DNA of 64,000 nt from contig CATNEN010000015.1 of NCBI GenBank assembly GCA_950097015.1, forward strand, positions 2,025,188 through 2,089,187. Direction: 5' to 3'. Source of the stretch: Macrostomum hystrix. Lineage: Eukaryota > Animalia > Platyhelminthes. The stretch's first letter is position 1. Every line of letters starts with the position of its first letter. A model generated the notes under the pieces. That model was not told where the DNA came from, ran no database searches, and saw only the letters and a program-made list of their open reading frames with translations. The position numbers and the translations under genes were made by a program. This document shows, in pieces, positions 2,526 to 53,413 of the stretch.

Positions 2526-3263
2526 ATGGTCGCCGCTTCAGCTTTCAACTCCGCCGTCTACAGCGCTCTGCTGGCCGTCACCGCTGCCAGGGTGGCTCAG
2601 TTCTCCTACATCGGCTGCTTCAAGGACAACTATACAGCCACCAGAGCCTTAAATGGGCTGCAGGGAGTGAGTCGACTTGGTGAATTTTTCTACAGCGACA
2701 GGGATGGCCTGCAGAGTGACAGCGGGATGTCAACCGGGTTCTGCGGCAACGTCTGCTCACTGGGCGGGTTTCCGTACTTCGGCATGCAGTACGGCAGGCA
2801 GTGCTACTGCGGCCTGTCCTACTGGCTCTACGGAGCTGCCACCGAGACTGAGTGCGACATGGCCTGCTGGGGAAACCCGGCACAAAAATGCGGGGGAGGA
2901 AACCGGATTTCCGTGTTTTCCCAGACCTATCCGGGTGAGGCGAACTACCTGCTCTATGATCGTTTAGTTTCTGGTCAAACGAATAATTAAATTGTACAAT
3001 TTCGGACAACCACTCTGTATCATTTAGAACAAAACTCTTTCGTGCTGAAAGCCATGCCCTCTCTGAAGGTCGTGACAAGTCAAACTACTTTCTTGACCAG
3101 CTCTGCCGCGAACATAATGGAATGTGCGGCTGTGTGCTGGGTTAGCTCTGACTGTCAAGCCCTGATCTTCTCTGAGCGGCTGCTCCTGTGCCACCTGCTC
3201 AGGTTCGCCTACCCACCTGCCAACCTGACTGGAATCATTGGAGACTACTACCTGCGTGGCTAA
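2526..3263 (+). CDS. W1: secreted WSC + PAN/apple-like protein, 2 exons (2526-2934, 3028-3263), intact
   Basis: Hydrophobic N-terminus. WSC signature YIGCF..D / M...FC...C...GFPYFG.QY...CYCG / C.M.C.G....CGG. GT donor at 2935 (phase 1) and AG acceptor at 3026-3027 join in frame. Ends GDYYLRG-TAA. Confidence 0.88.
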
Positions 3264-4480
3264 GACTACTACCTGTGTGGCTGAGACTACTACCTGTGTG
3301 GCTGAGACTACTACCTGCGTGGATGAGACTACTACTTGTGTGGCTGAGACTACTACCTGCGTTGATGAGACTACTACCTGCGTGGCTGAGACTACTACCT
3401 GTGTGGCTGAGACTACTACCTGTGTGGATGAGACTACTACCTGTGTGGCTGAGACTACTACCTGCGTTGATGAGACTACTACCTGCGTGGCTGAGACTAC
3501 TACCTGTGTGGCTGAGACTACTACCTGTGTGGCTGAGACTACTACCTGTGTGGCTGAGACTACTACCTGTGTGGCTGAGACTACTACCTGTGTGGCTGAG
3601 ACTACTACCTGTGTGGCTGAGACTACTACCTGCGTGGCTGAGACTACTACCTGTGTGGCTGAGACTACTACCTGCGTGGCTGAGACTACTACCTGCGTGG
3701 CTGAGACTACTACCTGCGTGGCTAAGACTACTACCTGCGTGGCTGAGACTACTACCTGGGTGGCTGAGACTACTACCTGAGGATGAGACTACTACCTGTG
3801 TGGCTGAGACTACTACCTGTGTGGCTGAGACTACTACCTGTGTGGCTGAGACTACTACCTGTGTGGCTGAGACTACTATCTGTGTGGCTGAGACTACTAC
3901 CTGCGTGGCTGAGACTACTACCTGCGTGGCTGAGACTACTACCTGCGTGGCTGAGACTACTACCTGAGGATGAGACTACTACCTGTGTGGCTGAGACTAC
4001 TACCTGTGTGGCTGAGACTACTACCTGTGTGGCTGAGACTACTACCTGTGTGGCTGAGACTACTACCTGCGTGGCTGAGACTACTACCTGCGTGGCTGAG
4101 ACTACTACCTGCGTGGCTGAGACTACTACCTGCGTGGCTGAGACTACTACCTGTGTGGCTGAGACTACTACCTGCGTGGCTGAGACTACTACCTGCGTGG
4201 CTGAGACTACTACCTGTGTGGCTGAGACTACTACCTGCGTGGCTGAGACTACTACCTGCGTGGCTGAGACTACTTACCTGCGTGGCTGAGACTACTACCT
4301 GTGTGGCTGAGACTACTACCTGTGTGGCTGAGACTACTACCTGTGTGGCTGAGACTACTACCTGTGTGGCTGAGACTACTACCTGTGTGGCTGAGACTAC
4401 TACCTGTGTGGCTGAGACTACTACCTGTGTGGCTGAGACTACTCACTGCGTGGATGAGACTACTACCTTCTTGAATGAAA
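3241..4480 (+). repeat. 21-bp stop-codon minisatellite after W1 (GAGACTACTACCTG[T/C]GTGGCT), ~58 units
   Basis: First unit is the last 6 codons + stop of W1. Occasional 20/22-bp slipped units shift the frame. Confidence 0.95.
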
Positions 4481-5520
4481 CTACTATGAAACTGCTGCCA
4501 GCCGTAGTTCTGAGCCACATCTCTGAAATGATCACGCTTAAAGTGCATTAACTAATTGTTTCTGCAAATTTTTTTATTAAAGAGATTAGACTCATCCGCT
4601 TTTACCTGTGGGAAGCGCTTAGCAATAATATGTGTAAATGTATTTCCTTGGATGGTCATAAGAACTATCAGGAAAGTGCAACTGTCAAGTACCAGTCTGC
4701 AGGCGAACTCTAAAGTAGTACTTTCTGTTCTCTGTTCCACTGTTCGCCAGCTGTTTTACTTTCTTTTGTTCTCGAGAAAATGCAGATGGCCAACAACATG
4801 TGATTTTCCGACGGATACTGATGTATTGTTCCCAAAACATCAATCAAATTTTATTCTTTACACAAGAAGACAGATTCTAGAAGTGGTTGGGATTCTAGAC
4901 GAATCTTTCTTTTAGAAGACAGAAAGATGAGTTGACCCAACAGGGAAGCAGGGAGTGACATGCACGCTGGCTTTTCTTGAATAATTAAAGCGGCTTGAAA
5001 TTATTTGCCTTTTTCACGGCCAGTTTTAATAAAAGTGCATACCTTGTGCCTGCTCACGATGCTTTTTTCAACAAAAAAGACGGGGAAAAAAGAAATGCAA
5101 ACGCCACACCTGCTCCTTAGAAACAGGTCAGGTAACCGTCTATTTACGTTTTCCGCTTTGGAGAGTCAGCACTATTATTTTATTTCATTAGCAGATTAGC
5201 TAGCGGAGTCAGTTTAAGACAGGATATATCATGGATTTCACACGAACTCAAAATAATCCCAATTGATTTCGTTTGAAACACAGAACCTCGGACCGTGGCG
5301 ATTGTAGCAAAAATGCAGACAGCCTAAAATATGGGTGTTATATTCATGCCTACTTATAAACACAATTCCTTAACAAACATGACTACTCGCTTAATAGTAT
5401 TTCTCGAGCAGACGCGCCAAAAAACAATAAACACGCAATGCAATGACACTGCCTTCTGAGCTGTTTCTTATTGAGAATGATGTGTCATCCAATTTTCGAA
5501 CTGAAAGGACATATGATCAA

Positions 5521-6196
5521 ATAGACAGGTGAGCTGAAGAGACAGGTGAGCTGGAGAGACAGGTGAGCTGGAGAGACAGGTGAGCTGGAGAGACAGGTGA
5601 GCTGGAGAGACAGGTGAGCTGGAGAGACAGGTGAGCTGGAGAAACAGGTGAGCTGAAGAGACAGCTGAGCTAAAGGACAGGTGAGCTGGAGAGACAGTGA
5701 GCTGAAGGGACAGGTGAGCTGAAGGGTCAGGTGAGCTGAAGGGACAGGTGAGCTGAAGGGACAGGTGAGCTGAAGGGACAGGTGAGCTGAAGGGACAGGT
5801 GAGCTGAAGGGACAGGTGAGCTAAATGGAAAGGTGAGCTGAAGGGACAGGTGAGCTGAAGGGACAGGTGAGCTGAATGGAAAGGTGAGCTGAAGAGACAG
5901 GTGAGCTGAAGGGACAGGTGAGCTGAAGAGACAGGTGAGCTGGAGAGACAGGTGAGCTGAAGAGACAGGTGAGCTGGAGAGACAGGTGAGCTGGAGAGAC
6001 AGGTGAGCTGAAGGACAGGTGAGCTGGAGAGACAGGTGAGCTGAAGAGACAGGTGAGCTGGAGAGACAGGTGAGCTGGAGAGACAGGTGAGCTGAAGGAC
6101 AGGTGAGCTGGAGAGACAGGTGAGCTGAAGAGACAGGTGAGCTGAAGAGACAGGTGAGCTGGAGAGACAGGTGAGCTGGAGAGACAGGTGAGCTGA
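5521..6196. repeat. 17-bp satellite (GACAGGTGAGCTG[A/G]AGA), left part of an array split by a transposon
   Basis: ~40 units. Resumes at 10080 after the inserted element. Confidence 0.95.
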
Positions 6197-10079: not shown

Positions 10080-10206
10080 GAAGGACAGGTGAGCTGGAGA
10101 GACAGGTGAGCTGAAGGACAGGTGAGCTGGAGAGACAGGTGAGCTGGAGAGACAGGTGAGCTGAAGAGACAGCTGAGCAGAAGGACAGGTGAGCTGAAGG
10201 GCAGGT
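10080..10206. repeat. 17-bp satellite, right part of the array split by the CACTA-like element
   Basis: Same unit and phase as 5521-6196. Confidence 0.9.
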
Positions 10207-11495
10207 GTGGGTTTGATTTTAATATGGCTTTATTATTATTATTTTAATTTTGTTATGTCTTTGCATTATCAAGTGTTCTTGAACATGCCGGCTACCGCAT
10301 CCAGAAATCATAGATTCCTCTTTTAGCAGCTTAGCATAACGCCAGTTCATTTTCGTGGATTCAGAACTGTGTTTGTCTTATTGCTACTCGTCTCGAAAAC
10401 TCGCATACAGCTGGCTTCTATTGTGATCCCGGATATCTAATGCGGTTTCACGGGCTCGCATGCAGCCAAATAAAATGTTTCTTGAAAGAAAATGATAGGT
10501 TTTTTATTATTTCAGGCTTCAGCCAAGTTTTGTAATCAGTTATTATTGTGCTGGTGCTTTCTGACAAGCAGGAAAGTGCTTCTAAACCGATAAAATATTC
10601 GCGTGTTTCGTTAGTCCATTAAGGCATTCTGCCTAAATGCCTTAATGTTAGTCCTAATGGGCGGAACTGCATTCCATTCTTTGGCAGAAAAACATTTATC
10701 GTTTAGCGAGGCGTTCCGCATTTTCGCTTTTGTAGCCCCCTTAAATACGGACTTAAATACTCAGTTTGACAAAATACATTCAGCCGCATGTATGTGCCTC
10801 GGGACTTGTGCGATACCTTATTTATGAGAAGTCAGAAGGGTTCCTGCCCTGCGAGACGGTGTGGATGTGCGGATGTGAGCGTGCATGTGTGCTCAGAGGT
10901 TATCTTGGAAAGTCTCTTGTGTGTGGCTGGTTTGTGTGCTTTTTGTTAGGCCTTCCTCACCCACCCCCGTCCTGGCTCAGAGTGCCCGGTGCCGCCATCT
11001 GATTGGCTGGGCGCGGGCATTGTGTGTCTATCCTACCCCAGCCCTGCGTGGCTTTGCCCTCACGCCAATCAGCTCTGCGTAGCTTTGCCCGTCCACCCAT
11101 CCAGCGCGTACAACCCTACCCCCCCAACGCGCTGTAGGCTTTGTTTGTGCTCCGCCCCTGTCTGCCCCCTTGTCGGCCCTAGTGGTATCGTTTTCTGCCC
11201 GGGCCAAGGGTACCACTCGCCCCCCTCGCGAACTTTAAAAGATCGTGCCGTAAAGACGGTCTCTTACGGCGAAGGCTCAATTCCTTGCATGCGAAGTGTT
11301 TATTGACTACATTTATTTATTGTAGTGATTGCGAGCGTATGGTTTATTGAAGTGCAAACATTGACGACAAATACATTCAGCGTCATCCTGCCATCCTATC
11401 GTGCGTCCCGACCGGTAAGCGCTGTATTCGTGTCTGTCCTTTCGGAGTGCCAGGCCCGCACGGAGTACTGTAATAGTCTTAGAAGTACTGTGTGA

Positions 11496-12417: not shown

Positions 12418-12577
12418 AGGTGGTAGTCTGTCTCAGCCACACAGGTAGTAGTCATAGCCACACGTAGTAGTCTCAGCCACACAGGTAGTAGTCTCAGCCA
12501 CACAGATAGTAGTCTCAGCCACACAGATAGTAGTCTCAGCTTCACAGGTAGTATAGTCTCAGCCACGCAGGTAGTAA
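12418..12577 (-). repeat. 21-bp stop-codon minisatellite downstream of W2, ~7 degenerate units
   Basis: Reverse complement of GAGACTACTACCTGTGTGGCT. Confidence 0.9.
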
Positions 12578-12598
12578 TCTAACTGTAATCTATGTAAT

Positions 12599-13328
12599 CT
12601 AACCTTCTACCTGCGATTTCGAGCCTCGCAGGTAGAAATCGCCAGCAACGCCAGTTAGGGTAGACGGCGGGTAGGCGAACCTGAGCAGGTAGCACTGACT
12701 TCGAATCTTTAAGGAGATCACAGCCTGACAGTCAGCGCTGGCATGGCACTGAGCCACGCACTTGATCTTCAATGTCACAGCGCTTGTCCAGAATGTGGTA
12801 TAAGTGGCCACCACAGTCAGGCTTGGCGTTTGGGTCCGGGTGAAGATGTTCCTACCTGCAAATCAAGTTTTTAAGGCTAAGTCACGGCTCCTAGAACTCT
12901 ACGAACTCCACGAATTCCTAGAACTACCTACCCGGGTAGGTTTGGGCGAACACGGAGTTCCGGTCGCTTCCTCCACAGATCTGTGACGAGTTTCCTGAGC
13001 AGGCCATGTTGCACTCGGACTCACTGGCTGCTCCGTAAAGCCAGAAGGACTTGCCACAAAAGCACTCACGGCTGTTCTGCACACCGAAGTACGTGAATCC
13101 GCCAAGTGAGCAGACATTGCTGCAGAAATCATGCGACATGGTGTTGCTGCGCACGCCTTCTTTGTTGTAAGCGAATTCACCAAGTGTGCTCACTCCATCC
13201 AGCCCGTTCAAGGCTCTGACGCTACGCCAATCATCCTTGAAGCAGCCGACGTAGGAGAACTGAGCCACCCTGGCAGCAGCGACAGCCAGCAGAGCGCAGC
13301 AGACAGCGGAGGCCAAAGCGCTGATCAT
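12599..13328 (-). CDS. W2: secreted WSC + PAN-like protein, 2 exons (13328-12932, 12855-12599), intact, chimeric
   Basis: ATG at 13328. GT donor at 12931 (phase 1), CAG acceptor at 12858-12856, in frame. Ends GDFYLRGSKSQVEG* because the canonical stop is mutated. Confidence 0.88.
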
Positions 13329-13702
13329 TATCGCCAATTACGAAGCTAACTATGAAGATAATATTTAACCGTTGCTGTTTTAGCCTTCTTAAGTAACATA
13401 CAACCTGAGCATAATCTCGCCGGACTTCTGTTTTACCTAAAGTAATATGTAAAATGCGATTTGCTGTCCAATTTATCACAATGGACTGGCCGAACCAATC
13501 AGAAAGCAGAACCTGCTTAAGGGGTGCTGACTTGTTTTAATACACCTAAATAGTCTATAAATTTCCTCAAAACTGCCAAATTATTTAAAAAAATAACTTT
13601 AAAAAAAATAATCTGAATAGTTGGCTCTAGGTATTCAAGTTCAATTCGGGTGTGCATGGACATTTCATAAAATTGATGTACGACAAAACTCAAGAGATGC
13701 AT

Positions 13703-13793
13703 GAGCTGAAGAGACAGGTGAGCTGAAAGGACAGGTGAGCTGAAGTGACAGGTGAGCTGAAGTGACAGGTGAGCTGAAGGGACAGGTGAGTTT
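13703..13793. repeat. 17-bp satellite island upstream of W2
   Basis: GAGCTGAAG[A/T/G]GACAGGT units. Marks the end of W2/W8 upstream homology. Confidence 0.9.
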
Positions 13794-15474: not shown

Positions 15475-16550
15475 ATGGCAGAGCTGCTCAATCAGCTACT
15501 TGGCATGACTTCGCGCCAATTGTCAGACCATCTGGAGTCACTTGGCTGCAGTACCGAAGACAGCGCCCGTGGCAATAAGAGCGACAAAATCAAACGCATT
15601 CTGTCCCTGCAAAAGGACGAGGGCGCCTCCAGCGACGCATCCAGCCTTCAGGCGCAGATCGACGAACTGCTTCGGACATCCGGCGAGACCAACGGCAACG
15701 CGGCCGGGCCCCCTGCAGCGACTGGACCTGACAATGAGGCCATGGAGGCGGAGATCCGAGCGACGGAGCAGCGCATCCGACTGCTGCAGCTGAAGCGTGA
15801 GGAAGCTGCACTGCGCGCCGAGCTCAGATCCCTCCCGGCCGCCCCGCAGCCCGCTGGAAATAGCTCTGGTGAGTGGCGACATAACCTCCACACTATTCTA
15901 ACGCATGATGATGAAGGAGATTATGCGCAGGCGCAGGAGCCCTGCCGAAGACGTCCAAGCCGCTGCTGGTGTCAGATTTCCTCAGCAGAGAAGGATCGTC
16001 TGAGAACACCGTTTTGCACAGTCGCTCAGGTGATTTGGTGTTTAAAGGCAACAAGTCTGTATGCGCTGAAAATATCAATCTGGCTCAGTGGATTATTGGA
16101 AATGCGAAGGTGTTGGACTGCATGCTGAACAAAGGACAGCTTGTTACAGTGGGTGCCGATGGCCGGCCGGACGTGTCAGAACTGAGGCAATACCTGAAGT
16201 ACAACATCCAGATCGGCGAACTGGCGGAGTCTGGCTTCGGAACCGCCAAGATCATGCGCTTTGACGAGAGCTACCGCATCAACCAGCACAGCAGCAGCTT
16301 TCCGTGGGCGACCGAGTCATTCCAGCTGCTGGCCAGGCACCTGCTAGCACCAGACAACACCAACGAATCGCGTTTCCAAAAGGTTAAATCTCATCAGACT
16401 CAACCAAGCCGGCCAGTCTGCAACAATTTCAATGCCAACAAGTGCTTCCGCAAGGCCTGCCATTTCCAGCACATCTGCCGAATCTGCAAGGGCAACCACC
16501 CGGCCAGTGCCCACGAGTCAGGCACCAGCCAAGATCCTGCAAAAAACTAA
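15475..16550 (+). CDS. Gag-like ORF1 of the YR element, probably with a 62-68-nt intron (exons 15475-15868, 15931/15937-16550)
   Basis: C-terminal CNNFNANKCFRKACHFQHICRICKGNHP zinc-finger motif typical of DIRS/Ngaro gag. The two open frames are joined by GTGAGT (15869), a CTAAC branch (15898-15902) and CAG (15928-15930 or 15934-15936), all phase 1. Confidence 0.8.
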
Positions 16551-18292
16551 TTGGGGCGGCCAGCGGGCGGCCCTCGCCATCGGGGACCGCCAACGAGCTG
16601 GCCCAGCTCCCTGTTTTTAGCCTTTTAACTCCTCAAGCAATGTCTGAAGCCGCTCTGCTCTGCTCCGGCCTTCACAACAAGCTGGCTGTTTGGGAAGAAG
16701 AGCTGCAATCCGATCCCGATGCCGACTTCATTTTGAAGGGTCTCCGTGATGGCTTTGAAATAACTAATCTGACTGGTATTCAAACTGCTAGCGAAGATAA
16801 TCACAGGTCCGCTACCTGTCCTGAAAATCGCGAGCAAGTCGAGAAGCTGATCTTGGATGAGCTGAAAAACAGCAGGTACATGCTAGTCGAAGACAGGCCG
16901 CGCATCATCAGCCCGCTAGGTGCCGTGGCCAAGTCATCTGGCGGTCTTCGCCTGATCCATGACGCCAGCCTGCCCCGCGGCCGGAGCATCAACGAGTACT
17001 TCAAGCAGGATAAGAAGCTTCGCTTTTCAACCGTTAGTTCTTTCACCAAGAAGCTGAAACCAGGCTGGTTTATGGCCAAAGTTGACCTCGCCAAGGCCTA
17101 CCGCTCCTGTCCAGTCAGCGCTAACGCCTACCAGATCACGGGGCTACGATGGACTTTCAGCGGTGAGAGCGAGCCCCGGTACCTCGTGGACACCTGTCTT
17201 GGCTTCGGGTTCGCTGCCAGCGTCAATGTGTTTCACCGACTCTCCGAAGCGGTCAAGCGCATGATGATTCGCCGAGGTTATCACGTCATCTGCAACTACC
17301 TCGACGACTTCGCCGTTGCCGCCAGCACCCTCGATGCCTGCCAGGAGGCCTACAATACCCTCCTGAGTCTTCTGCGTCGCCTGGGTTTTTCTATCAACTG
17401 GGAGAAAGTGTCTCCACCCAGTCAGTCTATGGTTTTTCTCGGCATCCACATCGACACGGCTGCCGGCCGACTAACTCTCCCGCAGGAGAAGCTCGAGTCT
17501 TTACAGAGCCTGCTGGATGCCGCAGCTGCCAGCAAGCGACTCAATAAGAAGCAACTGCAGAAGCTTTGTGGCAAAATTGGTTGGTTTTGCGAGGTCGCCC
17601 GCGCTGGTAGATCTTTACTTCGGAGCCTCATTAACTTGACCAACAGCTTGACTTTGCCTCATCACAAAATGCGCGTCGAAGGCCCACTGGAGGAGCAGTT
17701 GCGTTTCTGGAGATCAGCGACCAATTGGATGCACGGAATCGAGCTGTGGCCGCAGTTCGCCAAGCGGTTGGTCGTCGAGACAGACGCCTGCCTGACAGGT
17801 GGCGCTGCAGTGATCTCGGATGGAGCAGAGAGTGACTGGATGTTCGTTGACTGGGCTGCTGATTTTTCTGGCGCGTTGCAAGGCCTGCATATCAACTATT
17901 TGGAGTGCGCGATGCCTTTGGTTTTTATCATCCTGTTCAACGAGCGTTTGGCCAACTGTCACGTTGTTTTCTATACCGACAATTCGTCTGTTGCAGGGAT
18001 GCTGCGCAAGGGCTCTGCCAAGCCCCCAATCATTCAGGCGCTGACGCGTACAGCTATTCTAATTGCTCTTAAGTATCGCATTCATTTTGAAGTTTTTCAC
18101 GTTCCTGGGAGATACCAGATCTTTAGCGACCCTGCCTCCCGTCTGACTAATAAGCACGGTCTCATAAACTTTTTGCTTCGTTACTATGGCTCTATTTACG
18201 TCAACGCAGCTGCTGTTGCTACGCACGCGCTGTCTGCCGCTTCCTGCCAATCTCTCTTTTTGCAGGTCCAGAAGCTGCAGCGGGGCCCCTGA
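16442..18292 (+). CDS. Reverse transcriptase + RNase H (ORF2 of the YR element), uninterrupted; first ATG at 16640
   Basis: RLIHDAS, MAKVDLAKAYR, LGFGFAAS, NYLDDF; RNase H TDAC, HINYLE, YTDN, DPASR. Confidence 0.95.
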   Translation: MLPQGLPFPAHLPNLQGQPPGQCPRVRHQPRSCKKLIGAASGRPSPSGTANELAQLPVFSLLTPQAMSEAALLCSGLHNKLAVWEEELQSDPDADFILKGLRDGFEITNLTGIQTASEDNHRSATCPENREQVEKLILDELKNSRYMLVEDRPRIISPLGAVAKSSGGLRLIHDASLPRGRSINEYFKQDKKLRFSTVSSFTKKLKPGWFMAKVDLAKAYRSCPVSANAYQITGLRWTFSGESEPRYLVDTCLGFGFAASVNVFHRLSEAVKRMMIRRGYHVICNYLDDFAVAASTLDACQEAYNTLLSLLRRLGFSINWEKVSPPSQSMVFLGIHIDTAAGRLTLPQEKLESLQSLLDAAAASKRLNKKQLQKLCGKIGWFCEVARAGRSLLRSLINLTNSLTLPHHKMRVEGPLEEQLRFWRSATNWMHGIELWPQFAKRLVVETDACLTGGAAVISDGAESDWMFVDWAADFSGALQGLHINYLECAMPLVFIILFNERLANCHVVFYTDNSSVAGMLRKGSAKPPIIQALTRTAILIALKYRIHFEVFHVPGRYQIFSDPASRLTNKHGLINFLLRYYGSIYVNAAAVATHALSAASCQSLFLQVQKLQRGP

Positions 18293-35400: not shown

Positions 35401-35533
35401 CTAGTACCTGATTGAATGAGACTAGTACCTGATTGAATGAGACTAGTACCTGCTTGAATGAGACTAGTACCTGCTTGAATGAGACTAGTACCTGCTTGAA
35501 TGAGACTAGTACCTGATTGAATGAGACTACTAC
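23384..35533 (+). repeat. 12.1-kb array of the 21-bp stop-codon minisatellite, diverged consensus GAGACTAGTACCTGATTGAAT, ~580 units
   Basis: Starts at the W4 terminal codons (GGAAACTACTACCTGCGAGGCTGA) and changes to the new consensus within two units. 21-bp phase is kept throughout. Confidence 0.97.
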
Positions 35534-38996: not shown

Positions 38997-39285
38997 GACT
39001 ACTACCTGCGAGGCTGAGACTACTACCTGCGAGGCTGAGACTACTACCTGCGAGGCTGAGACTACTACCTGCGAGGCTGAGACTACTACCTGTGTGCCTG
39101 AGACTACTACCTGTGTGGCTGAGACTACTACCTGTGTGGCTGGACTGCTACCTGTGTGGCTGAGACTACTACCTGTGTGGCTGAGACTAATACTTGTGTG
39201 GCTGAGACTACTACCTGTGTGGCTGAGACTACTACCTGTGTGGCTGAGACTAATACTTGTGTGGCTGAGACTATTACCTAAGACT
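38974..39285 (+). repeat. 21-bp stop-codon minisatellite after W5, ~15 units
   Basis: The first five units carry the gene's own CGA-GGC-TGA variant; later units carry TGT-GGC-TGA. Confidence 0.95.
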
Positions 39286-41695: not shown

Positions 41696-42432
41696 TTAGC
41701 CACGTAGGTAGCCTCGCAGGTAATAGTCTCCTGTAAACCGAGTCAAGCTAGCTTGCGAGTAGACAAACCTGAGCAGGTAGCACAGCTGCTGCTGCTCAGA
41801 GAAAATTGCAGCCTGGCAGATGGGGCTGGCCTCGCAAAGGATGAGGCACTGAGAAGCGGCATTCGCAGCCAAGGTCCAGTGCGTGGTCTCGGCAGCTTCC
41901 ACTGTTAGGGTGAGTCTCGGAGATTTCGTGAAAAACGCTTTGTCTAAATGGATTGAAAAGGATGTGAGACATCGCGAGTCGCGAGACAGCTGAGGAAAGC
42001 AGAGACTTCAGAGAGCTAGCTAGTGTGCAACTTACCTGCATAGGTCAGCCTGAACACTGAGTTCCGGTTGACTGAACCGCAGATCTGACTCGAGTTCCCG
42101 CTGCAAACCATGTTGCATTCACTCGCATGGGCCACTCCCTGGGACCCGAATGACTGGCCGCAATAGCACTCAGAGCTGAACTGTACACCAAAGTAGGCGA
42201 ATCCACCGAGCGAGCACGCATTGCTGCAGAACTCGTGAGACATGCGGTTGCTTAGCAACCCGGAGCCCACCAGTGAAGTTCCACCGACTGAGCTGATTCC
42301 AATGAGCCCGTTTAAATCTCTAACACCAGCTGTGTTGTCGACGTAGCAGCCGATGCGCGAGAACTGAGCCACACGGGCAGCCGCGAGGGCTAGGAGAGCG
42401 CAGCAGACAGCAAAGAGCAGGCTCGTGCTCAT
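41696..42432 (-). CDS. W6: secreted WSC + PAN-like protein, 2 exons (42432-42036, 41943-41696), intact
   Basis: GTAAG donor at 42035 (phase 1), TTTAG acceptor at 41946-41944, in frame. Ends GDYYLRGYLRG-TAA. Confidence 0.9.
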
Positions 42433-44244
42433 GTTGCTGAATTATAAATAATACCGACCTGCCTGTGTGATGATTCTTATTGACAACCTTTTTGTCGTTT
42501 GCGATCCCTGAGGCGGCAATGCAAGCAGGGGACGGTTACACTGGGCGGCGCATGAATTGTTCTCAGAAGTCCAATTAGAACTCAATATTATCCAGTGCGA
42601 GCGCGCGCCGCAAGTAGCATTCAGCTCCCATTGGTCAATCCTTTGCAATGAGATTTGAAAGTCAACACTGTCTATTGGCCATTAGATATCGTCTTTATTC
42701 TAATATTTGGAACTGTAATTGTGGTCCGATGGACATTTCTTTGAGAAATTCGAAGGCCGGCCGAAGGTTAAAGTGCAATTCCCTGACTGAAATATTCAGT
42801 GCCGATTCAATCAGTAAAATTGCTTGTCAAACGGGGGGGTAAAAAGCTCATAAGTTTTTTAACTTTTCAGACTACCCACGTACATTTTGAACTTTTATGT
42901 ATCTCCAAAAATATTCAATCTATCGTCATGAAAATCCAGAACACGGTCTAACATTAGAGCTCTTTCCGATGAATCACAAGGTCAGCATCGTTGAGATACT
43001 TATCGATTGTGGTCAAAGACGCCGGTGACAAGGACAACAAAGACTGCCGGTGACAAGGACAACAAAGACGCCTTGCGAAGAGCGCGGCGTCGGTCTCGCT
43101 GCCTGGGCCGCTGCGCACTCCGCAAGCCGCACGAAACGGGCGGCTCCCACCGCCTCCTCGCTGCATCCGCTCGGGCCGGTGCACCCTGAAGCTAAGTCAA
43201 GTAAGTCCAGTCTCTGGGGGACGGGGGAAGTGGCTCGGCGTTGGCGATGAGTCGAACGAAGACGTGGAGCTCGCGGATCCAAGTGCTCAACTCGTCGATC
43301 CCTTGGAGGTGAATGAGATGTCGTCTGCACTCTTTCTCAAAAAAGCTGGCAGAATGTGCCGTGGACTTCCGCGTTTTCCTCACCTAGGCCGCACCCAGTT
43401 TGGAGGGCCATCAATGGATGACCAGATCTACAAATCCTGAGGAACTCTAAGGAACCCAGAGCTCAGTTCCAAATCCAGGTGACGCTGGAGCCTCCTGCGT
43501 CCCTGTCAGTTCCGCCGGGTGGCGCCAGGGACCGCTAGAACGCAACACGGAAGCTAGGTGAACCGGAGCAGGTGGGACGGCAGCTGCTGCTCAGAGAAGA
43601 TCGAACTGGACAATGCAGCCAAACCGATTTCCGACAGCGCTAGTCCACAATGGCATCAATCATAACCAGAATTGAATCAATCATCAAAATGATGACGTAA
43701 ATAAGACGAAGGGAGGGATAAATATAGGTCATCCAGAATGCTCTCAGCCCTCAGTACCTACCATGATACTACCATAGCTACAGAGAGCCGTCTTGGCCCA
43801 GACTCTGAGCGATGGAGCCTTCTTTCGAGCTTTTGAGTCCGTGCCAGGCTTAGCTCACTGGGCTCAGCTCACAATGGTAATTATTACCCATCAGGTGTGA
43901 CAGCCAGCATTTCACCATCCCTGGTCCCGGCTGAGGCAGCTTAACTTGAAGGCTGCTAATAGTGGCTAGAAACTGAAATCAAAACTGACCATCATTTTCC
44001 ATGCTTTTCCATTTTGAATTCTTTACTCGTACCAAGTTGAGGACTTGAAAATTTCAATGACTTTTGCTGCACACTAATTATCGTCAACACTTCACATGAT
44101 ATACTCGTAGAATTGAATCAAAGTAACTCAGTGGACTGATATGAGCTTGCATTTTTATTTAACATCATAGAATGTACTTCATGCTTTTCCTTAATAATCT
44201 CACATAGTTATTTATGTCAGACACGGGCACACAGGTACACAGTC

Positions 44245-44962
44245 TCAGCCACGCAGGTAGTAGTCTCCAGGTGTACTGCTCAGGTTGGCGGGTGGGTAGG
44301 CGAACCTGAGCAGGTGGCACAGCTGCTGCTGCTGAGAGAAGATCACAGCCTGGCAGTCGGAGCTGGGCTGGCACTGGACCAGGCAGCCCAGTCTGCTTGT
44401 GGAGGCGCTGGCCCACACAATGGCGTTGCTAGCGACAACGGTTTTAGTAGGCCGGGATGACTTCGAGAAGCAGTTGTTTTCTGTAAGGAGAATTCAAAAC
44501 AATCTTTACAACTGCAGCTCAAGTTGAAGCATGGGACCATACAAGTCAGAGCACAACCCACTGGGGTAGGTGAGAGCAAACACCGAGTTACGGAGGCCAC
44601 CGCCACAAACTTGGCTTGCATCTCCGTTGCAGCTCGTGCTGCAGTTGCCTTCGCTGACTGCTCCCAGCGATCCGTAGGCTCTGCCGCAGAAGCACTGGTT
44701 ACCCCGCCTGCACCCCGAAGTACGGGAAGCCGCCGAGACTGCAGAGGCCCGCGCAGAACTGGGGCGTCATGCTTCCAGTTCTGATGCCGAGGCTGGAAAC
44801 GGAAAAACCACCAAGTTTTACAACAGCAGTGAGCCCGTCCAAGTCTCTGTTACTGTCCTTGTCCTTGTAGCAGCCGATGTAGGAGACCTGGAACAGCCGG
44901 CCAGACACGCAGGCCAGGACGGCACACGCAGCCAGCAGTGTGTGAGTCAGGCGTAAGCTCAT
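44245..44962 (-). pseudogene. W7: WSC + PAN-like gene (44962-44562, 44480-44245) with a +1 frameshift in exon 1; exon 2 intact
   Basis: GGGTAACCAGTGC versus GGGTTCCAGTGC in the near-identical W9 creates a TAA at 44701-44699. Exon 2 ends GDYYLRG-TGA with only ~1 extra degenerate unit. Confidence 0.78.
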
Positions 44963-45755: not shown

Positions 45756-46252
45756 CACAGCGAAAAGAACGTTCAGGTTTAGATGGTGCTGATAGCAGTA
45801 GTAGGCACGCTTATTCAAGAAAGTGAATGTCATTCTAAGCCTCTTCTTGTGACAAATTGCTGTGAAGCAAAAACTGAAGACGCTGTTCTATTCAATTTTT
45901 TACCCTACTTTGAATGCCCTGTTGCGATCTAGTCAAGCAGTCTTGTGGCATCTCTGAACTGAGCTGTGTAGGGAGCTGTTTTAAACTTTGTCCTCGGGAC
46001 AACTTTCGTTGATTATTTCCCATCCATGTCACTCTACAAAGCCACCCAGCAGGGGGGCTATTCCTTGCGATTAGCAGTCTCCTTCACAAGTCAAAATGTT
46101 TGGGCAGTGCATCCACTCAAAGGTTTGGATGCAGTGACACTCCTAACAATGCTCAAATCTTCCCTGCTGCAATTTACGGAGCTTCCGTTTGTCAAAATCT
46201 GAATAAAAACTACCGCTGACCCGTACCAGGAATATTCTAGTCAGCCCGATTC

Positions 46253-46461
46253 AGCTCACCTGTCCCTTAAGCAAACCTGTCCCTTCAGCTCATCTGTCAG
46301 TTCAGCTCATCTGTCCTTTCAGCTCACCTGTCACTTCAGCTCACCTGTCCCTTAAGCTCACCTGTCCCTTCAGCTCACCTGTCCCTTGAGCTCACCTGTC
46401 CCTTAAGCTAACCTGTCCCTTAAGCTCAGCTGTCCTTTCAGCTCACCTGTCACTTCAGCTC
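46253..46461. repeat. 17-bp satellite island in reverse orientation, upstream of W8
   Basis: CTTCAGCTCACCTGTCC units. Confidence 0.9.
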
Positions 46462-46861
46462 ATGCATCTCTTGAGTTTTGTCGTACATCAATTTTCTGAA
46501 ATGTCCATGCACACCCGAATTGAACTTAAATACCTCGAGCCAACTATTCAGATTCCAAAAGTTTTTTTTTTTAATAATTTGGCAGTTTTGAGGAAATTTA
46601 CAGACTATTTAGGTGTATTAAAACAACAGTCAGCACCCCTTATGCTTCACAATTAGCTCAGAAGGCTTCGCAAGCAGGTTCTGCTTTCTGATTGGTTCGG
46701 CCAGTCCATTGTGATAAATTGGACAGCAAATCGCATTTTACATGTTACTTTAGGTAAAACAGAAGTCCGGCGAGATTATGCTCAGGTTGTATGTTACTTA
46801 AGAAGGCTAAAACAGCAACGGTTAAATATTATCTCCATAGTTAGCTTCGTAATTGGCGATA

Positions 46862-47956
46862 ATGATCAGCGCTTTGGCCTCCGCCGTCTGCTGCGCTCTG
46901 CTGGCTGTCGCTGCTGCCAGGGTGGCTCAGTTCTCCTACGTCGGCTGCTTCAAGGATGATTGGCGTAGCGTCAGAGCCTTGAACGGGCTGGATGGAGTGA
47001 GCACACTTGGTGAATTCGCTTGCGACAGACAAGGCGTGCGCAGCAACACCATGTCGCACGAGCTCTGCAGCAATGTCTGCTCACTTGGCGGATTTCCGTA
47101 CTTCGGAGTGCAGTTCAGCCGTGAGTGCTTTTGCGGCAAGTCCTACTGGCTCTACGGAGCTGCCAATGCGTCCGACTGCAACATGGCCTGCTCGGGGAAC
47201 TCATCACAGATCTGTGGAGCAAGCAACCGGAACTCCGTGTTCGCCCAGACCTACCTGGGTGAGAATGAACTACATGCCAAAGACTAAGGGTTTTTAAGAC
47301 CATAAGATCAGCAAGAATTGAGTCGTGAAAAACGCTTGTAGGCCCAGTTCTTGAAGGCCCAAGTGATTTGGCAGCGAGAATTGCAGTCTCTAAGGCTTAG
47401 GGTCGATATATTTATTGGTTAACGATAGCGGAGGATGGGTGTGTTGTATGAGCACGTTCGATGCTGCAAGTTGCAAGCGGATACCCTACAAATACCCTAC
47501 AAATACCCTACAAATACCCTACAAATCAATGGTGGGCACGAGCGTAGCTCTTAATTAAGCTGAAGTGAATAATGAAGCACAAGAGATGCATAGCCAGCTA
47601 TGCCGCTAAAATTTCTATTGTGAAACTGCCCAAATACCGAAAAATACTCGTTCTAGAAATTCAAGGATTTCTAACTCTTTTAAGAGGAGCAGATACATAG
47701 CGCTAAAACTTGAATTACAGGAAGGAACACTTTTACCAGGACCCAAACGCCAAGCCTGACTGTGGTGGCCACAAGTACCACATTCTGGACAAGAGCTGTG
47801 ACTTTGAATATCGAGTGTGTGGCCCAGTGCCAAACCGACGCTGACTGTCAGGCTGTGATTTTCTCTGAGCAGCAGGGACAGTGCTACCTGCTCAGGTTCG
47901 CCTACCCACCACCTAGCCTAACTGGCATTGCTGGAGACTACTACCTGTGTGGCTGA
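46862..47956 (+). CDS. W8: secreted WSC + PAN-like protein, 2 exons (46862-47258, 47721-47956), intact
   Basis: ATG at 46862. GTGAG donor at 47259 (phase 1), TTACAG acceptor ending 47720, in frame. Ends GDYYLCG-TGA. Confidence 0.9.
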
Positions 47957-48941
47957 GACTACTACCTGTGTGGCTGAGACTACTACCTGTGTGGCTGAGA
48001 CTACTATCTGTGTGGCTGAGACTACTACCTGTGTGGCTGAGACTACTACCTGTGTGGCTGAGACTACTACCTGTGTGGCTGAGACTACTATCTGTGTGGC
48101 TGAGACTACTACCTGTGTGGCTGAGACTACTACCTTGTGTGGCTGAGACTACTACCTGTGTGGCTGAGACTACTACCTGTGTGGCTGAGACTACTACCTG
48201 TGTGGCTGAGACTATACTACCTGTGTGGCTGAGACTACTACCTGTGTGACTGAGACTGCTACCTGTGTGGCTGAGACTACTATCTGTGTGGCTGAGACTA
48301 CTAGCTGTGTGGCTGAGACTACTACCTGTGTGGCTGAGACTACTATATGTGTGACTGAGACTACTATCTGTGTGGCTGAGACTACTAGCTGTGTGGCTGA
48401 GACTACTACCTGTGGGGCTGAGACTACTACCTGTGTGGCTGAGACTACTACCTGTGTGGCTGAGACTACTACCTGTGTGGTCGAGACTACTACCTGTGTG
48501 GCTGAGACTACTACCTGTGTGGCTGAGACTACTACCTGTGTGGCTGAGACTACTACCTGTGTGGCTGAGACTACTACCTGTGTGGCTGAGACTACTACCT
48601 GTGTGGCTGAGACTACTACCTGTGTGGCTGAGACTACTACCTGTGTGGCTGAGACTACTACCTGTGTGGCTGAGACTACTACCTGTGTGGCTGAGACTAC
48701 TACCTGTGTGGTCGAGACTACTACCTGTGTGGCTGAGACTACTACCTGTGTGGCTGAGACTACTACCTGTGTGGCTGAGACTACTACCTGTGTGGCTGAG
48801 ACTACTACCTGTGTGGCTGAGACTACTACCTGTGTGGCTGAGACTACTACCTGTGTGGCTGAGACTACTACCTGTGTGGCTGAGACTACTACCTGTGTGG
48901 CTGAGACTACTACCTGTGTGGCTGAGACTAGTAACTGCGTG
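47934..48941 (+). repeat. 21-bp stop-codon minisatellite after W8, ~47 units
   Basis: Begins in the last codons of W8. Confidence 0.96.
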
Positions 48942-49539: not shown

Positions 49540-49995
49540 GACAGGGGAGAGATGACACAGGGGAGAGATGAGACAGGGGAGAGAGATAATACATGGGGAG
49601 AGAGATAAGACACTGGAGAGAGGAGACTGGGAGACATGAGACACGGGAGAGATGAGACACGGGACACATGAGACACGGGACACACGAGACACGGGACACA
49701 CGAGACACGGGACACACGAGACACGGGACACACGAGACACGGGACACATGAGACACGGGACACATGAGACACGGGACACATGAGACACGGGACACACGAG
49801 ACACGGGACACACGAGACACGTGACACACGAGACACGGGACACACGAGACACGGGACACATGAGACACGGGACACATGAGACACGGGACACATGAGACAC
49901 GGGACACATGAGACACGGGACACATGAGACACGGGACACATGAGACACGGGACACATGAGACACGGGACACATGAGACACGGGAGAGATAAGACA
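49540..49995. repeat. 16-bp minisatellite (GAGACACGGGACACA[T/C]) with a degenerate left end
   Basis: ~25 units. Replaces the distal intron and exon 2 position of W9. Confidence 0.92.
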
Positions 49996-50446: not shown

Positions 50447-50758
50447 TGTTTAGTGACTACTTCAGGCGTCAGGAAAGGAGAGCAATGACCTTCTTCAGGC
50501 CTTAGAGAGCCCATTAAAGATGCCAAAGCCTGAAACCGACTTTGTAATATATACTCAACTGCTCACAACCAATAAGCCCATGCAAGTCCCATGTCTTTTC
50601 CAAAGCGTCTTCAGCACTTGAAGGCTGCCCGCAGAAGCCATTGTCAAACAATGACACTTCTGGACTCCTGAAGCTAAAATAGAGAATTCATCCCAACGGA
50701 ATAAACGAAGTCAACTACTAATTTTCTCTTAGTGAGGGTCTTACTTCTCTTTTCTCTT

Positions 50759-51107
50759 GCCAGGGTGGCTCAGTTCTCGTACACCGGCTGCTTCAATGAC
50801 GATTTTCTAAGCGTCAGAGCCTTGAACGGGCTGCAGGGAGTGACTAAACTTGGGGAATTCACTTACAGCGACGCGCAAGGTGTGTTCAGCAACACCAGCA
50901 TGTCGCACGAGCTCTGCAGCAATGTCTGCTCACTTGGCGGATTCCCGTACTTCGGTGTGCATTGCAGCCGTGAGTGCTTTTGTGGCAAGTCCTTCTGGCT
51001 TTACGGAGCGGCCAGTGAGTCCGAGTGCAACATGGCCTGCTCAGGAAACTCGTCACAGATCTGTGGAGGAAGCAGCTGGAGCTCCGTGTTCGCCCAGACC
51101 TACCCGG
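50759..51107 (+). pseudogene. W10: WSC exon lacking start codon/signal peptide, phase-1 donor and PAN exon
   Basis: Homology starts at ARVAQFS (50759), directly after the W9 upstream segment. Donor region reads CCGGTTAGG instead of CCGGGTAGG. It is followed by a ~190-bp hairpin-rich insert and then the 21-bp array. Confidence 0.8.
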
Positions 51108-51304: not shown

Positions 51305-51540
51305 CTGAGACTACTACCTGTGTGGCTGAGACTACTACCTGGGTGGCTGAGACTACTACCTGTGTGGCTGAGACTACTACCTGGGTGGCTGAGACTACTA
51401 CCTGTGTGGCTGAGACTACTACCTGCGTGCCTGAGACTACTACCTGTGTGGCTGAGACTACTACCTGCGTGCCTGAGACTACTACCTGTGTGGCTGAGAC
51501 TACTACCTGTGTGGCTGAGACTACTACCTGGGTGGCTGAC
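51305..51540 (+). repeat. 21-bp minisatellite after W10, ~11 units, retained although exon 2 is gone
   Basis: GAGACTACTACCTG[T/G/C]GTG[G/C]CT units. Confidence 0.93.
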
Positions 51541-52704
51541 TAGCTGCCTGGTTGGGAAATATTCAATTAAGTTTTTTAATTCCTTTTTCCTCTTATCATC
51601 GGCTTTTGCATTCAGGCTTAAAGTTACTTTGTTAATTGGAGAGCAGCTTTTAGACTACGAGTTCAAGGTTTATACAGGTTTCTGAGTCGACTGCAAGCAC
51701 GCGACATTCTGTCGACGCGCGGCGCAAGTTTTGTAGTTTTAAAGCATTCTAGTTTGTAGTTTTGTACCTTGTAAGCTTGGATGCTTGTAAACTCGTTTTA
51801 TTTCAGCAAAAATGAATTTTACATTCTCTTTCCTGAAAGCTTCTTCTTAACAAATGAATTAGGCCTGGTCCGCTCACAATTGCCAAAAAATTCATGTCAC
51901 TGTGGCGCGACTTGGCTGTTCCTATTGACAACCTCTAACTTAACCCTTAGTGTTCTCTTTGTCAATGTACGCAACTTGCTCGCGCGGCACGATACAACTA
52001 AGTTACATTAGGTTGAAACGGTCTCATCGTGTTTTTCGCCCTTGCTAACACTATCTCAGAGTTCGTTGTGCAGACCAGACAGACGTGATGTGCTTTCTAA
52101 AAATAGCAACTGACGTCAGTGACGTGCAAAACGTCACTCCTACGTCACTCCTACGAAGGCCCTGACTCATGATCGAAACACCAAGAACAGTAAATATGTT
52201 TACTATACTTTTACGAGACAAAGACGCCAGCGCGGGACGAAGAGGTGATGACTCTTGAATTGTGCACTTGAAGTGCACAAGAAAGAACACTTATAGCGCA
52301 GGCGCGGCTAGGGGTGAACAGGCGGGCAGAGAGAGAGACAGTCCAGACGGCACGAGAGAGAGGTGGGTCGGACAGTCCCTCAGTGTCAACGAAAAGGCAC
52401 CAAAGCTACCTAGCAGGTGGGGCACTGAAAGCTAGAGAGACACCAATAGACCCCTAGGCTGTTTTCAAACAGATTCCACGCAGACTACTTGCTTGCAAAA
52501 GTAACACAGCGAAGATCATAAAAGAACTGTATTACTATCTACGAGTACTTACAGCTCTTCGGCGTTCTGGTTGGGTAGAGAAAGTTCGCAAGTCTGTCTT
52601 TTTTCGAGTAGCAACAGAAATTATGACAACTAGTTATAATCCAGGCATCAGAATTAAATGACAAAGAACTGCGCGTTAAATTCTAAAGTCTACAGAAAAT
52701 CACC

Positions 52705-53413
52705 ATGAGAGCTTTGGTCTCCGCTGTCTGCTGCGCTCTGCTGGCCGTCGCGGCTGCCAGGGTGGCTCTGTTCTCTTACATCGGCTGCTTCATGGACGAC
52801 TATCATCGCGTCAGGGCCTTAAACGGGCTGGATGGAGTGAGCAATCTTGGTGGATTCACTTACACCCACGGTTACGGCGTGCGCAGCAACAAAATGTCGC
52901 ATGATTTCTGCAACAATGTCTGCTCACTTGGCGGATTCCCGTACTTCGGTGTGCAGAACAGCCGTGAGTGCTTTTGTGGCAAGTCCTTCTGGCTTTACGG
53001 AGCAGCCAGTGAGTCCGAGTGCAACATGGCCTGCTCAGGAAACTCGTCACAGATCTGTGGAGGAAGCGACCGGAACTCCGTGTTCGCCCAAACCTACCCG
53101 GGTAGGTAGTTCTAGGAATTCGTGGAGTTCGTAGAGTTCTAGGAGCCGTGACTTAGCCTTAAAAACTTGATTTGCAGGTAGGAACATCTTCACCCGGACC
53201 CAAACGCCAAGCCTGACTGTGGTGGCCACTTATACCACATTCTGGACAAGCGCTGTGACATTGAAGATCAAGTGCGTGGCTCAGTGCCATGCCAGCGCTG
53301 ACTGTCAGGCTGTGATCTCCTCAAAGATTCGAAGTCAGTGCTACCTGCTCAGGTTCGCCTACCCACCGTCTATCCTAACTGGCGTTGCTGGCGATTTCTA
53401 CCTGCGAGGCTAG
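52705..53413 (+). CDS. W11: secreted WSC + PAN-like protein, 2 exons (52705-53101, 53178-53413), intact
   Basis: GT donor at 53102 (phase 1), TTTGCAG acceptor ending 53177, in frame. Ends GDFYLRG-TAG. Confidence 0.9.

Follow-up and report, generated by a model that had tools for sequence, protein, structure and literature searches.

A stretch of 64,000 nucleotides from the flatworm Macrostomum hystrix (contig CATNEN010000015.1; hereafter the window) carries, at positions 2526–53413, a tandem cluster of 11 copies of a gene that combines a WSC domain with a PAN/apple domain. We lean, with modest confidence, towards reading them as two-exon genes for small, secreted, disulfide-locked putative binding proteins, which evolve by birth and death, have loops under relaxed constraint and belong to a gland setting.

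In this gene, exon 1 codes for a predicted signal peptide and the WSC domain, a phase-1 intron follows, and exon 2, of about 77 aa, codes for the PAN/apple domain. According to tblastn, the latter exon is present after 9 of the 11 copies. The introns start at phase-1 GT donors and end at AG acceptors that keep the frame, and the coding sequences come to 209–217 aa (spliced lengths were counted, the exons were not joined), in agreement with the originally predicted size of about 210 aa. The N-terminal leader has a hydrophobic core followed by AAA and looks cleavable, which supports the proposed signal peptide. Retroelements sit between the copies. The features, with signal peptides as predicted, are as follows.

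2526–2934 (+): c1 exon 1, signal peptide and WSC domain (Pfam, 56.8 bits), phase-1 donor GTGAGG
3028–3263 (+): c1 exon 2, PAN/apple domain with stop TAA, placed by tblastn and splice phase; PAN_1 18.9 bits, under the cut-off; coding sequence 214 aa
3241–4468 (+): example of a 3′ minisatellite, after c1, with a 21-bp unit (TRF)
12932–13328 (−): c2 exon 1, signal peptide and WSC domain (Pfam, 63.6 bits); 5′ part c7-like, 3′ part c10-like
12599–12855 (−): c2 exon 2, PAN domain; the usual stop is lost, which adds 7 residues; coding sequence 217 aa
20055–20451 (+): c3 exon 1, signal peptide and WSC domain (Pfam)
20623–20858 (+): c3 exon 2, PAN domain (25.8 bits); coding sequence 210 aa
22555–22960 (+): c4 exon 1, signal peptide and WSC domain (Pfam)
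23170–23407 (+): c4 exon 2, PAN domain (28.9 bits), shifted by one base relative to the phase-1 donor of the family
38244–38637 (+): c5 exon 1, signal peptide and WSC domain (Pfam)
38761–38996 (+): c5 exon 2, PAN domain (24.1 bits); coding sequence 209 aa
42036–42432 (−): c6 exon 1, signal peptide and WSC domain, of a sister sublineage
41696–41943 (−): c6 exon 2, PAN domain (30.7 bits), extended by 4 C-terminal residues, with two possible in-phase acceptors
44562–44962 (−): c11 exon 1, signal peptide and WSC domain; one extra base leads to TAA at 44701–44699
44245–44480 (−): c11 exon 2, PAN domain (25.6 bits)
46862–47258 (+): c7 exon 1, signal peptide and WSC domain (Pfam)
47721–47956 (+): c7 exon 2, PAN domain (27.4 bits) after an intron of 462 bp; coding sequence 210 aa
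50047–50446 (−): c8 exon 1, signal peptide and WSC domain (Pfam), of a distant subfamily; no PAN exon
50732–51107 (+): c9 WSC exon, with GTG in place of the ATG of its relatives and a shortened leader; no PAN exon
52705–53101 (+): c10 exon 1, signal peptide and WSC domain (Pfam)
53178–53413 (+): c10 exon 2, PAN domain (PAN_1 15.1 bits, PAN_3 17.7); coding sequence 210 aa
43524–43650 (−): decayed remnant of a PAN exon that contains an internal stop (two tblastn segments, E 7e-4)
703–864 (−): PAN exon, partial or a relic, from a distant subfamily and outside 2526–53413 (tblastn E 6e-4; hmmsearch 4e-5; no Pfam match)

Seven of the 11 copies (c1, c2, c3, c5, c6, c7 and c10) appear to be intact, with complete reading frames, canonical splice sites and all 12 cysteines. 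A single base breaks the frame in c4 and likewise in c11, the PAN exon is missing from c8 and c9, and c9 has also lost its ATG. The cluster of 11 genes that had been described could be located in full, but c11 is interrupted by a stop and only the seven copies named above look intact. The phase slip in c4 exon 2 adjoins a run of six T at about 23181–23186 and represents a genuine frameshift or an indel introduced by the assembly. The extra base of c11 is also found in the redundant C1 copy. Both breaks may be assembly errors; a redundant copy of the locus differs by 27 one-base indels and no substitutions over 3965 coding bases.

The damage raises the question of whether the cluster is a graveyard, in which most copies decay and the conserved appearance is inherited from functional members elsewhere. 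Four broken or truncated copies, two relic exons, the retroelements between copies and a runaway repeat array of 12 kb after c4 fit this explanation. Still, seven copies retain everything expected of a working gene as listed above, the two single-base breaks may not be biological, and selection has acted on these lineages, as the framework omega of 0.22 for the clade of window copies shows. We consider decay of most of the cluster very improbable.

The 21-bp unit of the arrays corresponds to the last six codons of exon 2 together with the stop, and reads D-Y-Y-L-C-G-stop in the coding frame. Arrays similar to the one after c1 were found by TRF at 12422–12580, 20836–21349, 38974–39279, 47934–48941, 51305–51539 and 53453–53628, and the 12-kb array after c4 (23405–35534) consists of a variant unit. 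In c9 a 21-bp array directly follows the WSC exon, and the reading frame of c8 continues into a 16-bp repeat (49629–49995). In the 21-bp array the coding frame has a stop in each unit and differs from the Thr-rich frame; on this ground a fungal Wsc-type sensor was rejected as the identity of these genes.

The family extends well beyond the window. We counted at least 150 copies of exon 1 in the genome (150 scored matches of 411 candidates), and most of the sampled loci carry the PAN exon. Outside the M. hystrix genome, the family was seen only in Macrostomum flatworms. In the tree, the cluster itself combines three sublineages, with c6 in a sister sublineage and c8 in a distant subfamily. Its loops have no synonymous differences between c2 and c7 and a dS of 0.26 between c2 and c10, whereas the framework dS of c2 to c10 is 0.06; c2 is a chimeric copy, close to c7 in its loops and to c10 in its framework. 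Damaged copies, relic exons, the chimera and the mixture of sublineages in one cluster all agree with the birth-and-death mode that had been proposed.

The expected WSC plus PAN/apple architecture was recovered by profiles as well as by fold. The WSC profile PF01822 (cut-off 27.8 bits) matched all ten open exon-1 reading frames at 55.4–63.6 bits (E 1e-15 to 1e-17). PAN_1 (PF00024, cut-off 21.4 bits) was exceeded by six of the nine exon-2 peptides (24.1–30.7 bits), while those of c1, c2 and c10 stayed below it (14–19 bits). The AF2 model of c1 exon 1 (pLDDT 91.7) matched the WSC domain of Kremen1 with Z 16.8 and rmsd 1.2 Å over 92 residues, followed by the WSC domains of glyoxal oxidase (Z 14.8) and Wsc1 (Z 13.8). 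Model and matches together support a predicted WSC fold, i.e. a PAN-like core wrapped by a long L5 loop. A natural M. lignano homologue, P0001, was modelled with pLDDT 92 and pTM 0.83 as two PAN-type domains, with strands at 136–208 around helix 161–169. Foldseek matches included the factor XI apple domain, the HGF N domain and the lectin SML-2, with a probability of at most 0.98 and weak E values (0.04–0.4).

The framework described in the original prediction is indeed nearly invariant: eight cysteines and the columns SLGGF.YF, C.CG, C.G, Q.CG and SVF do not vary in the alignment. In c1 numbering, C31, C73, C77, C93, C95, C110, C114, C122 and G123 (with the CGG motif) are invariant in 59–67 paralogues. 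The WSC cysteine positions map onto the published Wsc1 disulfide scheme, and by homology to Wsc1 and Kremen1 the eight probably correspond to four disulfides. In the PAN/apple domain, whose core typically has 4–6 cysteines, four cysteines are invariant or nearly so in 43 paralogues. The most conserved part, across paralogues and M. lignano, is the last PAN beta-strand (G-D-Y-Y-L-R-G).

Against this framework stand two variable segments. Loop B (c7 positions 53–65) is the most variable 13-residue window among 67 non-redundant paralogues, with a mean entropy of 2.96 bits; loop A (c7 positions 33–39) reaches 2.62, and the rest of the mature exon 1.50. Pairwise identity among the window copies is 37% in the loops vs 69% in the framework. 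All the loop strings quoted earlier are present in the alignment. The claim that variability lies in two segments needs to be softened, however: A and B are the most variable contiguous segments of the WSC exon, but a similar variability is seen at single positions (46, 89, 104 and 110–113) and over the first 30 residues of exon 2.

Compared with Kremen, the WSC domain of this family has about 17 extra residues in L1/L2. In the model, loop A is a coil after beta-1 and loop B a confidently predicted beta-hairpin ahead of the helix; the two variable segments would be the L1/L2 loops of a WSC domain. In the published Wsc1 structure, one end of the fold is covered by L1, L2, L4 and L5, and it is this description that suggests a shared location of loops A and B at one end of the domain.

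Codon models gave an omega of 0.36–0.43 in the loops vs 0.17–0.22 in the framework, and at non-synonymous sites the loops evolve about 2.5 times faster. Loop omega is significantly below 1 (LRT 109, p 1e-25), with about 8 of the 21 loop sites near neutral. The absence of positively selected sites had been named beforehand as grounds for refuting the glycan-recognition reading, and no codon with beta > alpha at p < 0.05 was detected among the 67 paralogues or within the window clade, in a comparison of paralogues that has low power. These tests assume a single tree, an assumption violated by exchange between copies. The loops show relaxed constraint while remaining under purifying selection, with no detectable diversifying selection. 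Because they evolve faster but are still constrained in this way, the family diversifies through duplication, exchange between copies, dispersal and decay, without demonstrable positive selection. The cluster shows that loops as conspicuously variable as these are no proof of adaptive diversification.

These results bear directly on the idea that the genes have diversified into a repertoire of glycan-recognition proteins that serve innate immunity or mucus, with the loops as specificity sites under diversifying selection. The architecture resembles that of lectins (beta-glucan is bound by fungal WSC domains, as cited, and galactose by PAN lectins such as SML-2), the lineage-specific expansion is large and no contiguous segments vary more than the loops. 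In the youngest clade, moreover, loop B has an omega of about 0.75, not significantly below 1, and some close pairs reach a loop dN/dS of 1.0–1.4. Those high pairwise values, however, come from comparisons with the chimeric c2 and rest on very few synonymous sites, and neither the overall loop omega nor the site tests agree with such selection. We regard a repertoire of this kind as improbable.

Purifying selection in every part of the gene, the near-neutral loop sites and the high conservation of the PAN half and the C-terminal strand might instead point to redundant paralogues kept for dosage or bulk secretion (structural, adhesive, eggshell or mucus), whose tolerant loops have no role in specificity. 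We find this rather unlikely: the loops are constrained (omega of about 0.4) and form a confident hairpin, which argues that they matter, and the age and divergence of the paralogues (framework dS 0.4–1.5) set them apart from the products of a recent amplification.

In the reading that we prefer, that of small secreted binding proteins, the PAN half and the WSC core would form a rigid scaffold, and the L1/L2 insert with loops A and B would be a tolerant, partly solvent-exposed end of the domain. This end differs between paralogues and may tune which glycan or protein is bound, while the diversity of the family would be driven by the four processes named above.

As to where such proteins act, the prostate-limited transcripts of M. 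lignano (Weber et al. 2018, Table S1) include at least 20 rows with WSC or "fungistatic metabolite" hits, which the text of that study calls the most frequent. Mlig-pro46 resembles WSCD2, and a transcript with two WSC domains is needed for a prostate antigen. Because WSC proteins dominate these seminal-fluid candidates, a reproductive-gland role appears at least as plausible as immunity. By analogy with M. lignano, gland secretion seems the most likely setting, with prostate and seminal fluid as the leading candidate. The Mlig-pro46 and Mlig-pro63 primers had no match among the loci compared, and the protein searches returned no transcript-derived protein of M. hystrix.

A bolder and doubtful extension would turn the 150 or more WSC-PAN genes into a Macrostomum-specific recognition repertoire, with the conserved PAN as the handle, WSC as the head and the enlarged L1/L2 hairpin setting specificity. 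It would serve in post-mating interactions between hermaphrodite partners (seminal fluid vs recipient) or in microbe recognition, and the 3′ stop-codon minisatellites would promote exchanges that shuffle the heads. If the proteins are gland secretions, flatworm reproductive biology would gain a very large, defined gene family with a confident structural model, on which the diversification of lectin-like proteins of seminal fluid or surfaces could be tested in a hermaphrodite.

Among known systems, Kremen1/2, the kringle-WSC-CUB Wnt co-receptors, offer the closest solved WSC structure (sequence E 2e-9), but the cluster proteins have no kringle, CUB, transmembrane segment or tail. Membership of the Kremen family was rejected, as only WSC and PAN were found and the coding sequence ends about 77 aa after the intron. 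The Kremen1 WSC domain binds a protein, Dickkopf, and not a glycan. With fungal Wsc1-type sensors and WSC lectins (ScWsc1 7PZ2, SiWSC3) the cluster shares the 8-Cys WSC fold and the CGG motif; it differs from Wsc1 in having PAN after WSC instead of a Ser/Thr-rich stalk, membrane anchor and cytoplasmic tail. Exon 2 has the PAN core known from factor XI apple, the HGF N domain, Sarcocystis SML-2 and microneme MIC4 (C-x3-C ... C ... C, a helix on a five-stranded sheet), but here a single PAN is fused to WSC and the whole-model matches are weak.

The prostate-limited M. lignano transcripts with WSC-type hits (Mlig-pro set, Mlig-pro46, RNA815_80.4) stand for secreted proteins with WSC domains from the same genus, and many of the transcripts are short, at 500–1100 nt. 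Many of them look like two-WSC proteins, and the link to the cluster is at the domain level only. Two have an oyster "Plasminogen" entry as best hit over 168–207 aa, a lead that these two may combine WSC and PAN. The closest relatives are M. lignano proteins of 206–219 aa annotated as "WSC domain-containing" or "Apple domain-containing" (for example BOX15_Mlig016881g1 and A0A1I8G8W0). Like the cluster genes, they combine a signal peptide, WSC and PAN in about 210 aa, with a phase-1 intron after the WSC exon and a C-terminal G-D-Y/F-x-x-R-G end, and they are 42–55% identical to c7 exon 1. At the one M. lignano locus that was read, unlike in the cluster, no stop-codon minisatellite follows the gene. 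We found no family name for these uncharacterised proteins in the literature. The WSC-PAN architecture is already visible in M. lignano annotations, and the cluster documents a lineage-specific expansion of this uncharacterised architecture.

The window, the final 64 kb of contig C15 in a 220-Mb assembly, is eukaryotic: it carries spliced genes, ORFs derived from retroelements and numerous minisatellites. A hydrophobic N-terminal leader and a Cys-rich domain are common to ten ORFs of 134–367 aa. All ten match the Pfam WSC profile PF01822 at 55–64 bits (cut-off 27.8), which confirms the WSC domain named in the original prediction. The PAN/apple module that it also proposed is present as a separate exon; a location within exon 1 was rejected, as no Pfam PAN match was found there at E <= 0.1. 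Reading the sequence downstream of c11, one of the eleven gene copies (c1–c11), revealed a PAN-like Cys pattern in a second exon past a short intron. With this exon as the tblastn query, a counterpart was detected behind 9 of the 11 copies. Of the nine exon-2 peptides, six score above the 21.4-bit cut-off of PF00024 (PAN_1) and three match it weakly. The same tblastn search returned two further fragments:

43524-43650, degenerate exon-2 relic
703-864, degenerate exon-2 relic

In the two-exon copies a GT donor lies in phase 1, one base past the codon after a conserved Tyr, and is joined by an in-phase AG acceptor (c4 deviates, its PAN frame being shifted by one base). Introns measure 76–462 bp and coding sequences 209–217 aa, lengths that were counted with the exons unjoined. 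Alignment of the regions upstream of the copies gave no sign of a long conserved promoter; a recurrent ATTGG is all that emerged. It forms the core of a T-T-C-T-G-A-T-T-G-G-like motif located approximately 110–130 bp 5′ of the ATG in c3, c4, c5, c6, c8, c10 and c11. This core, a CCAAT box on the opposite strand, is the sole shared upstream element; other likeness in the 5′ flanks is limited to the pairs c2/c7 and c8/c11.

Searches and folds were run exon by exon, and the full-length fold is that of a natural Macrostomum lignano protein, P0001. Its model, for which 106 sequences of the family were aligned, consists of two sheet-plus-helix domains (pLDDT 92, pTM 0.83). Foldseek ranked Kremen1, Wsc1 and the glyoxal-oxidase WSC domain at the top, followed by the factor XI apple domain, the HGF N domain and the PAN lectin SML-2. 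Exon 1 of c1 folded alone (pLDDT 91.7) superimposes on the Kremen1 WSC domain with Z 16.8 and an rmsd of 1.2 Å over 92 of 109 residues. Approximately 17 residues remain unaligned, in agreement with the wider gap that separates the first Cys from the helix Cys (39 residues in the family vs 21 in Wsc1).

The c1 exon 1 model also places the two segments of the WSC exon that had been described as hypervariable loops. Loop A (positions 33–39, c7 numbering) is a coil immediately past strand beta-1, and loop B (53–65) is a confident beta-hairpin (c1 residues 54–63) just N-terminal of the helix. In Wsc1 terms they are L1 and L2. According to the Wsc1 paper, L1, L2, L4 and L5 jointly cover one end of the domain; this description, our one source on the point, suggests that loops A and B would share one surface. 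N-glycosylation in the loops was considered and rejected: sequons are rare there, the common one being at framework position 115.

Among 67 paralogues, mean entropy is 2.96 bits in loop B and 2.62 bits in loop A, compared with 1.50 bits in the mature exon outside the loops; pairwise identity of the window copies is 37% for both loops together vs 69% for the rest of the mature exon. The two loops are thus the most variable contiguous stretches, but the description as two hypervariable loops holds only in part, since similar variability occurs at framework positions 46, 89, 104, 110–113 and 123–124 and across the initial 30 residues that the PAN exon encodes.

Diversifying selection on the loops, which the original prediction implied, is not supported by the codon analyses. 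Per-partition codon-model fits on a scaled common tree gave an omega of 0.17 for the framework and 0.375 for the loops in the 67 paralogues, and 0.22 and 0.43 in the window clade; the omega of exon 2 is 0.32. These and the following tests work on paralogue comparisons that are partly saturated, and exchange between copies breaks their single-tree assumption. In a grid-likelihood script of our own, a simplified test of the FEL/FUBAR type, loop omega was significantly below 1 (alpha 1.4, beta 0.5, LRT 109, p 1e-25), and site by site no codon had beta > alpha at p < 0.05 in either the 67-paralogue set or the window clade. Near neutrality is seen at about eight sites of the loops and at a few of the framework (33, 36, 39, 55, 57, 58 and 62 in the loops; also 46, 89, 104 and 113), and the clearly constrained loop sites are D34, 35, 53, 54, 56, 60, 61 and 63–65. 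In the youngest clade loop B has an omega of approximately 0.75, indistinguishable from 1. We rank the immune repertoire of the original prediction third among the possible settings of the family.

The 67 paralogues are non-redundant full exon-1 sequences, accompanied by 43 exon-2 sequences; the M. hystrix genome holds at least 150 scored exon-1 matches among 411 candidates, spread over many contigs, and the PAN exon is present at most sampled loci. In the tree, c1–c5, c7, c9 and c10 form one clade with two copies from another contig, C1; c6 falls into a sister clade, and c8 and c11 into a distant subfamily. Copy c2 is a mosaic, c7-like from the leader to the loop and c10-like in the remainder.

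Seven copies appear intact (c1, c2, c3, c5, c6, c7 and c10), with short C-terminal extensions on c2 and c6. The PAN exon of c4 is shifted by one base relative to the donor phase, beside a T6 run. Copy c8 has no PAN exon and its ORF continues into a 16-bp repeat; c9 also lacks a PAN exon, its leader is shortened and GTG replaces the ATG. The break in c11 and a second version of part of the cluster are located as follows:

44962-44562, minus strand, c11 exon 1, in which one extra base creates a TAA stop at 44701-44699
G000:C1:27527630-27555945 (L073-L079), redundant copy on contig C1, matching the last 28.2 kb of C15

The last 28.3 kb of C1 are an inverted copy of window positions 35756–64000 at 99.3% identity. 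Between the two versions, 3965 coding bases contain 27 one-base indels and 0 substitutions, which is the signature of assembly error and not of alleles. The two contig ends are redundant assemblies of one locus, the C1 copy being the error-richer, and the overlap ends at the edge of a 12-kb array. Both single-base breaks, in c4 and in c11, may be spurious; the extra base of c11 occurs in both versions, which are not independent data. A decaying cluster is ranked fourth.

The repeats and flanking elements are as follows:

3241-4468, 12422-12580, 20836-21349, 38974-39279, 47934-48941, 51305-51539 and 53453-53628, 21-bp minisatellites 3′ of genes
23405-35534, 12.1-kb array of a variant 21-bp unit, 3′ of c4
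5523-6196, 10080-10207, 13702-13790, 36945-37534 and 46250-46462, minisatellite with a 17-bp unit (AGACAGGTGAGCTGAAG), both strands, intergenic
49629-49995, 16-bp repeat inside the c8 ORF
15475-19311, DIRS-like retroelement between c2 and c3, with gag-like, reverse-transcriptase/RNase H and tyrosine-recombinase ORFs
1188-2190, reverse-transcriptase fragment before c1
55731-56543, 56631-57221 and 60194-60862, minus strand, ORFs past the cluster

The 21-bp unit corresponds to the final six codons of the PAN exon plus the stop, and each unit therefore carries an in-frame stop. These arrays might be taken for a mucin-like exon rich in Thr (E-T-T-T-C-V-A) and resembling the stalk of fungal Wsc sensors, a reading that we rejected: the PAN-exon frame reads D-Y-Y-L-C-G-stop in each unit, M. 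lignano proteins stop at the corresponding Gly, and none of the three plus-strand frames of the 12-kb variant unit is free of stops. Two giant minus-strand ORFs (3898 and 4042 aa, 23231–35537) are artefacts of a stop-free repeat. The 21-bp minisatellite also lies behind paralogues at nine comparison loci (L001, L006, L013, L015, L017, L018, L022, L027 and L034); neither the more distant subfamilies nor the M. lignano locus L031 have it. The copy followed by the 12.1-kb array, c4, is also the one with the out-of-phase PAN exon. The 17-bp and 16-bp periods are not multiples of three. Past the cluster (54900–64000), both strands carry long ORFs that resemble exons of unrelated genes.

WSC and PAN modules bind glycans or proteins, and the family proteins are probably secreted, rigid two-module binders. 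Conservation is highest in the PAN half and the C-terminal strand and variability is highest at the L1/L2 end of the WSC domain, which suggests a common PAN handle with a variable WSC head. The sole evidence on tissue context, on which our ranking of settings is based, comes from M. lignano, where WSC/'fungistatic metabolite' is the commonest annotation (at least 20 rows) among 76 prostate-limited putative seminal-fluid transcripts (Weber et al. 2018). One of them, the WSCD2-like Mlig-pro46, affected sperm competitiveness in one screen, and a two-WSC-domain transcript is required for a prostate antigen. RNAi primers for Mlig-pro46 and Mlig-pro63 had no match in the 79 loci compared, and no WSC-PAN annotation was found in the supplements of PMC4490696 and PMC7336406. 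First in our ranking comes a putative gland secretion, for which seminal fluid is the foremost candidate, and second a redundant bulk secretion.

When c7 exon 1 served as the query, a word-based search found M. lignano proteins (139–219 aa, top identity 55%) and, besides these, only two weak JGI matches; a profile search again gave M. lignano only. An exhaustive HMMER search gave 12,725 matches because WSC domains are common; among the best 150 (at least 201 bits), the full-length single-unit ones were all from M. lignano. These searches suggest that the family may be absent outside Macrostomum, which is unproven because the listed matches are saturated by multi-WSC fungal proteins. Judging from these relatives, a macrostomid flatworm distinct from M. 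lignano is the most likely source of the window. We found no paper describing a WSC-PAN family, and literature searches combining Macrostomum with PAN/apple were likewise empty.

The M. lignano proteins, named 'WSC domain-containing' or 'Apple domain-containing', have the same layout as the window copies and a C-terminus of the form G-D-Y/F-x-x-R-G. The P0001 gene has a phase-1 intron (69 bp) at the same position and, unlike the window genes, no repeat after the stop. It has a WSC-PAN neighbour 2.8 kb downstream (L031 13546-14295), and a WSC gene lies 8 kb from that of another M. lignano protein, P0003 (L032 18894-20137); tandem arrangement is thus common to both species. For M. lignano, public databases already contain the WSC-PAN architecture and relatives of these genes, and the cluster is a further example of a known, uncharacterised kind of protein.
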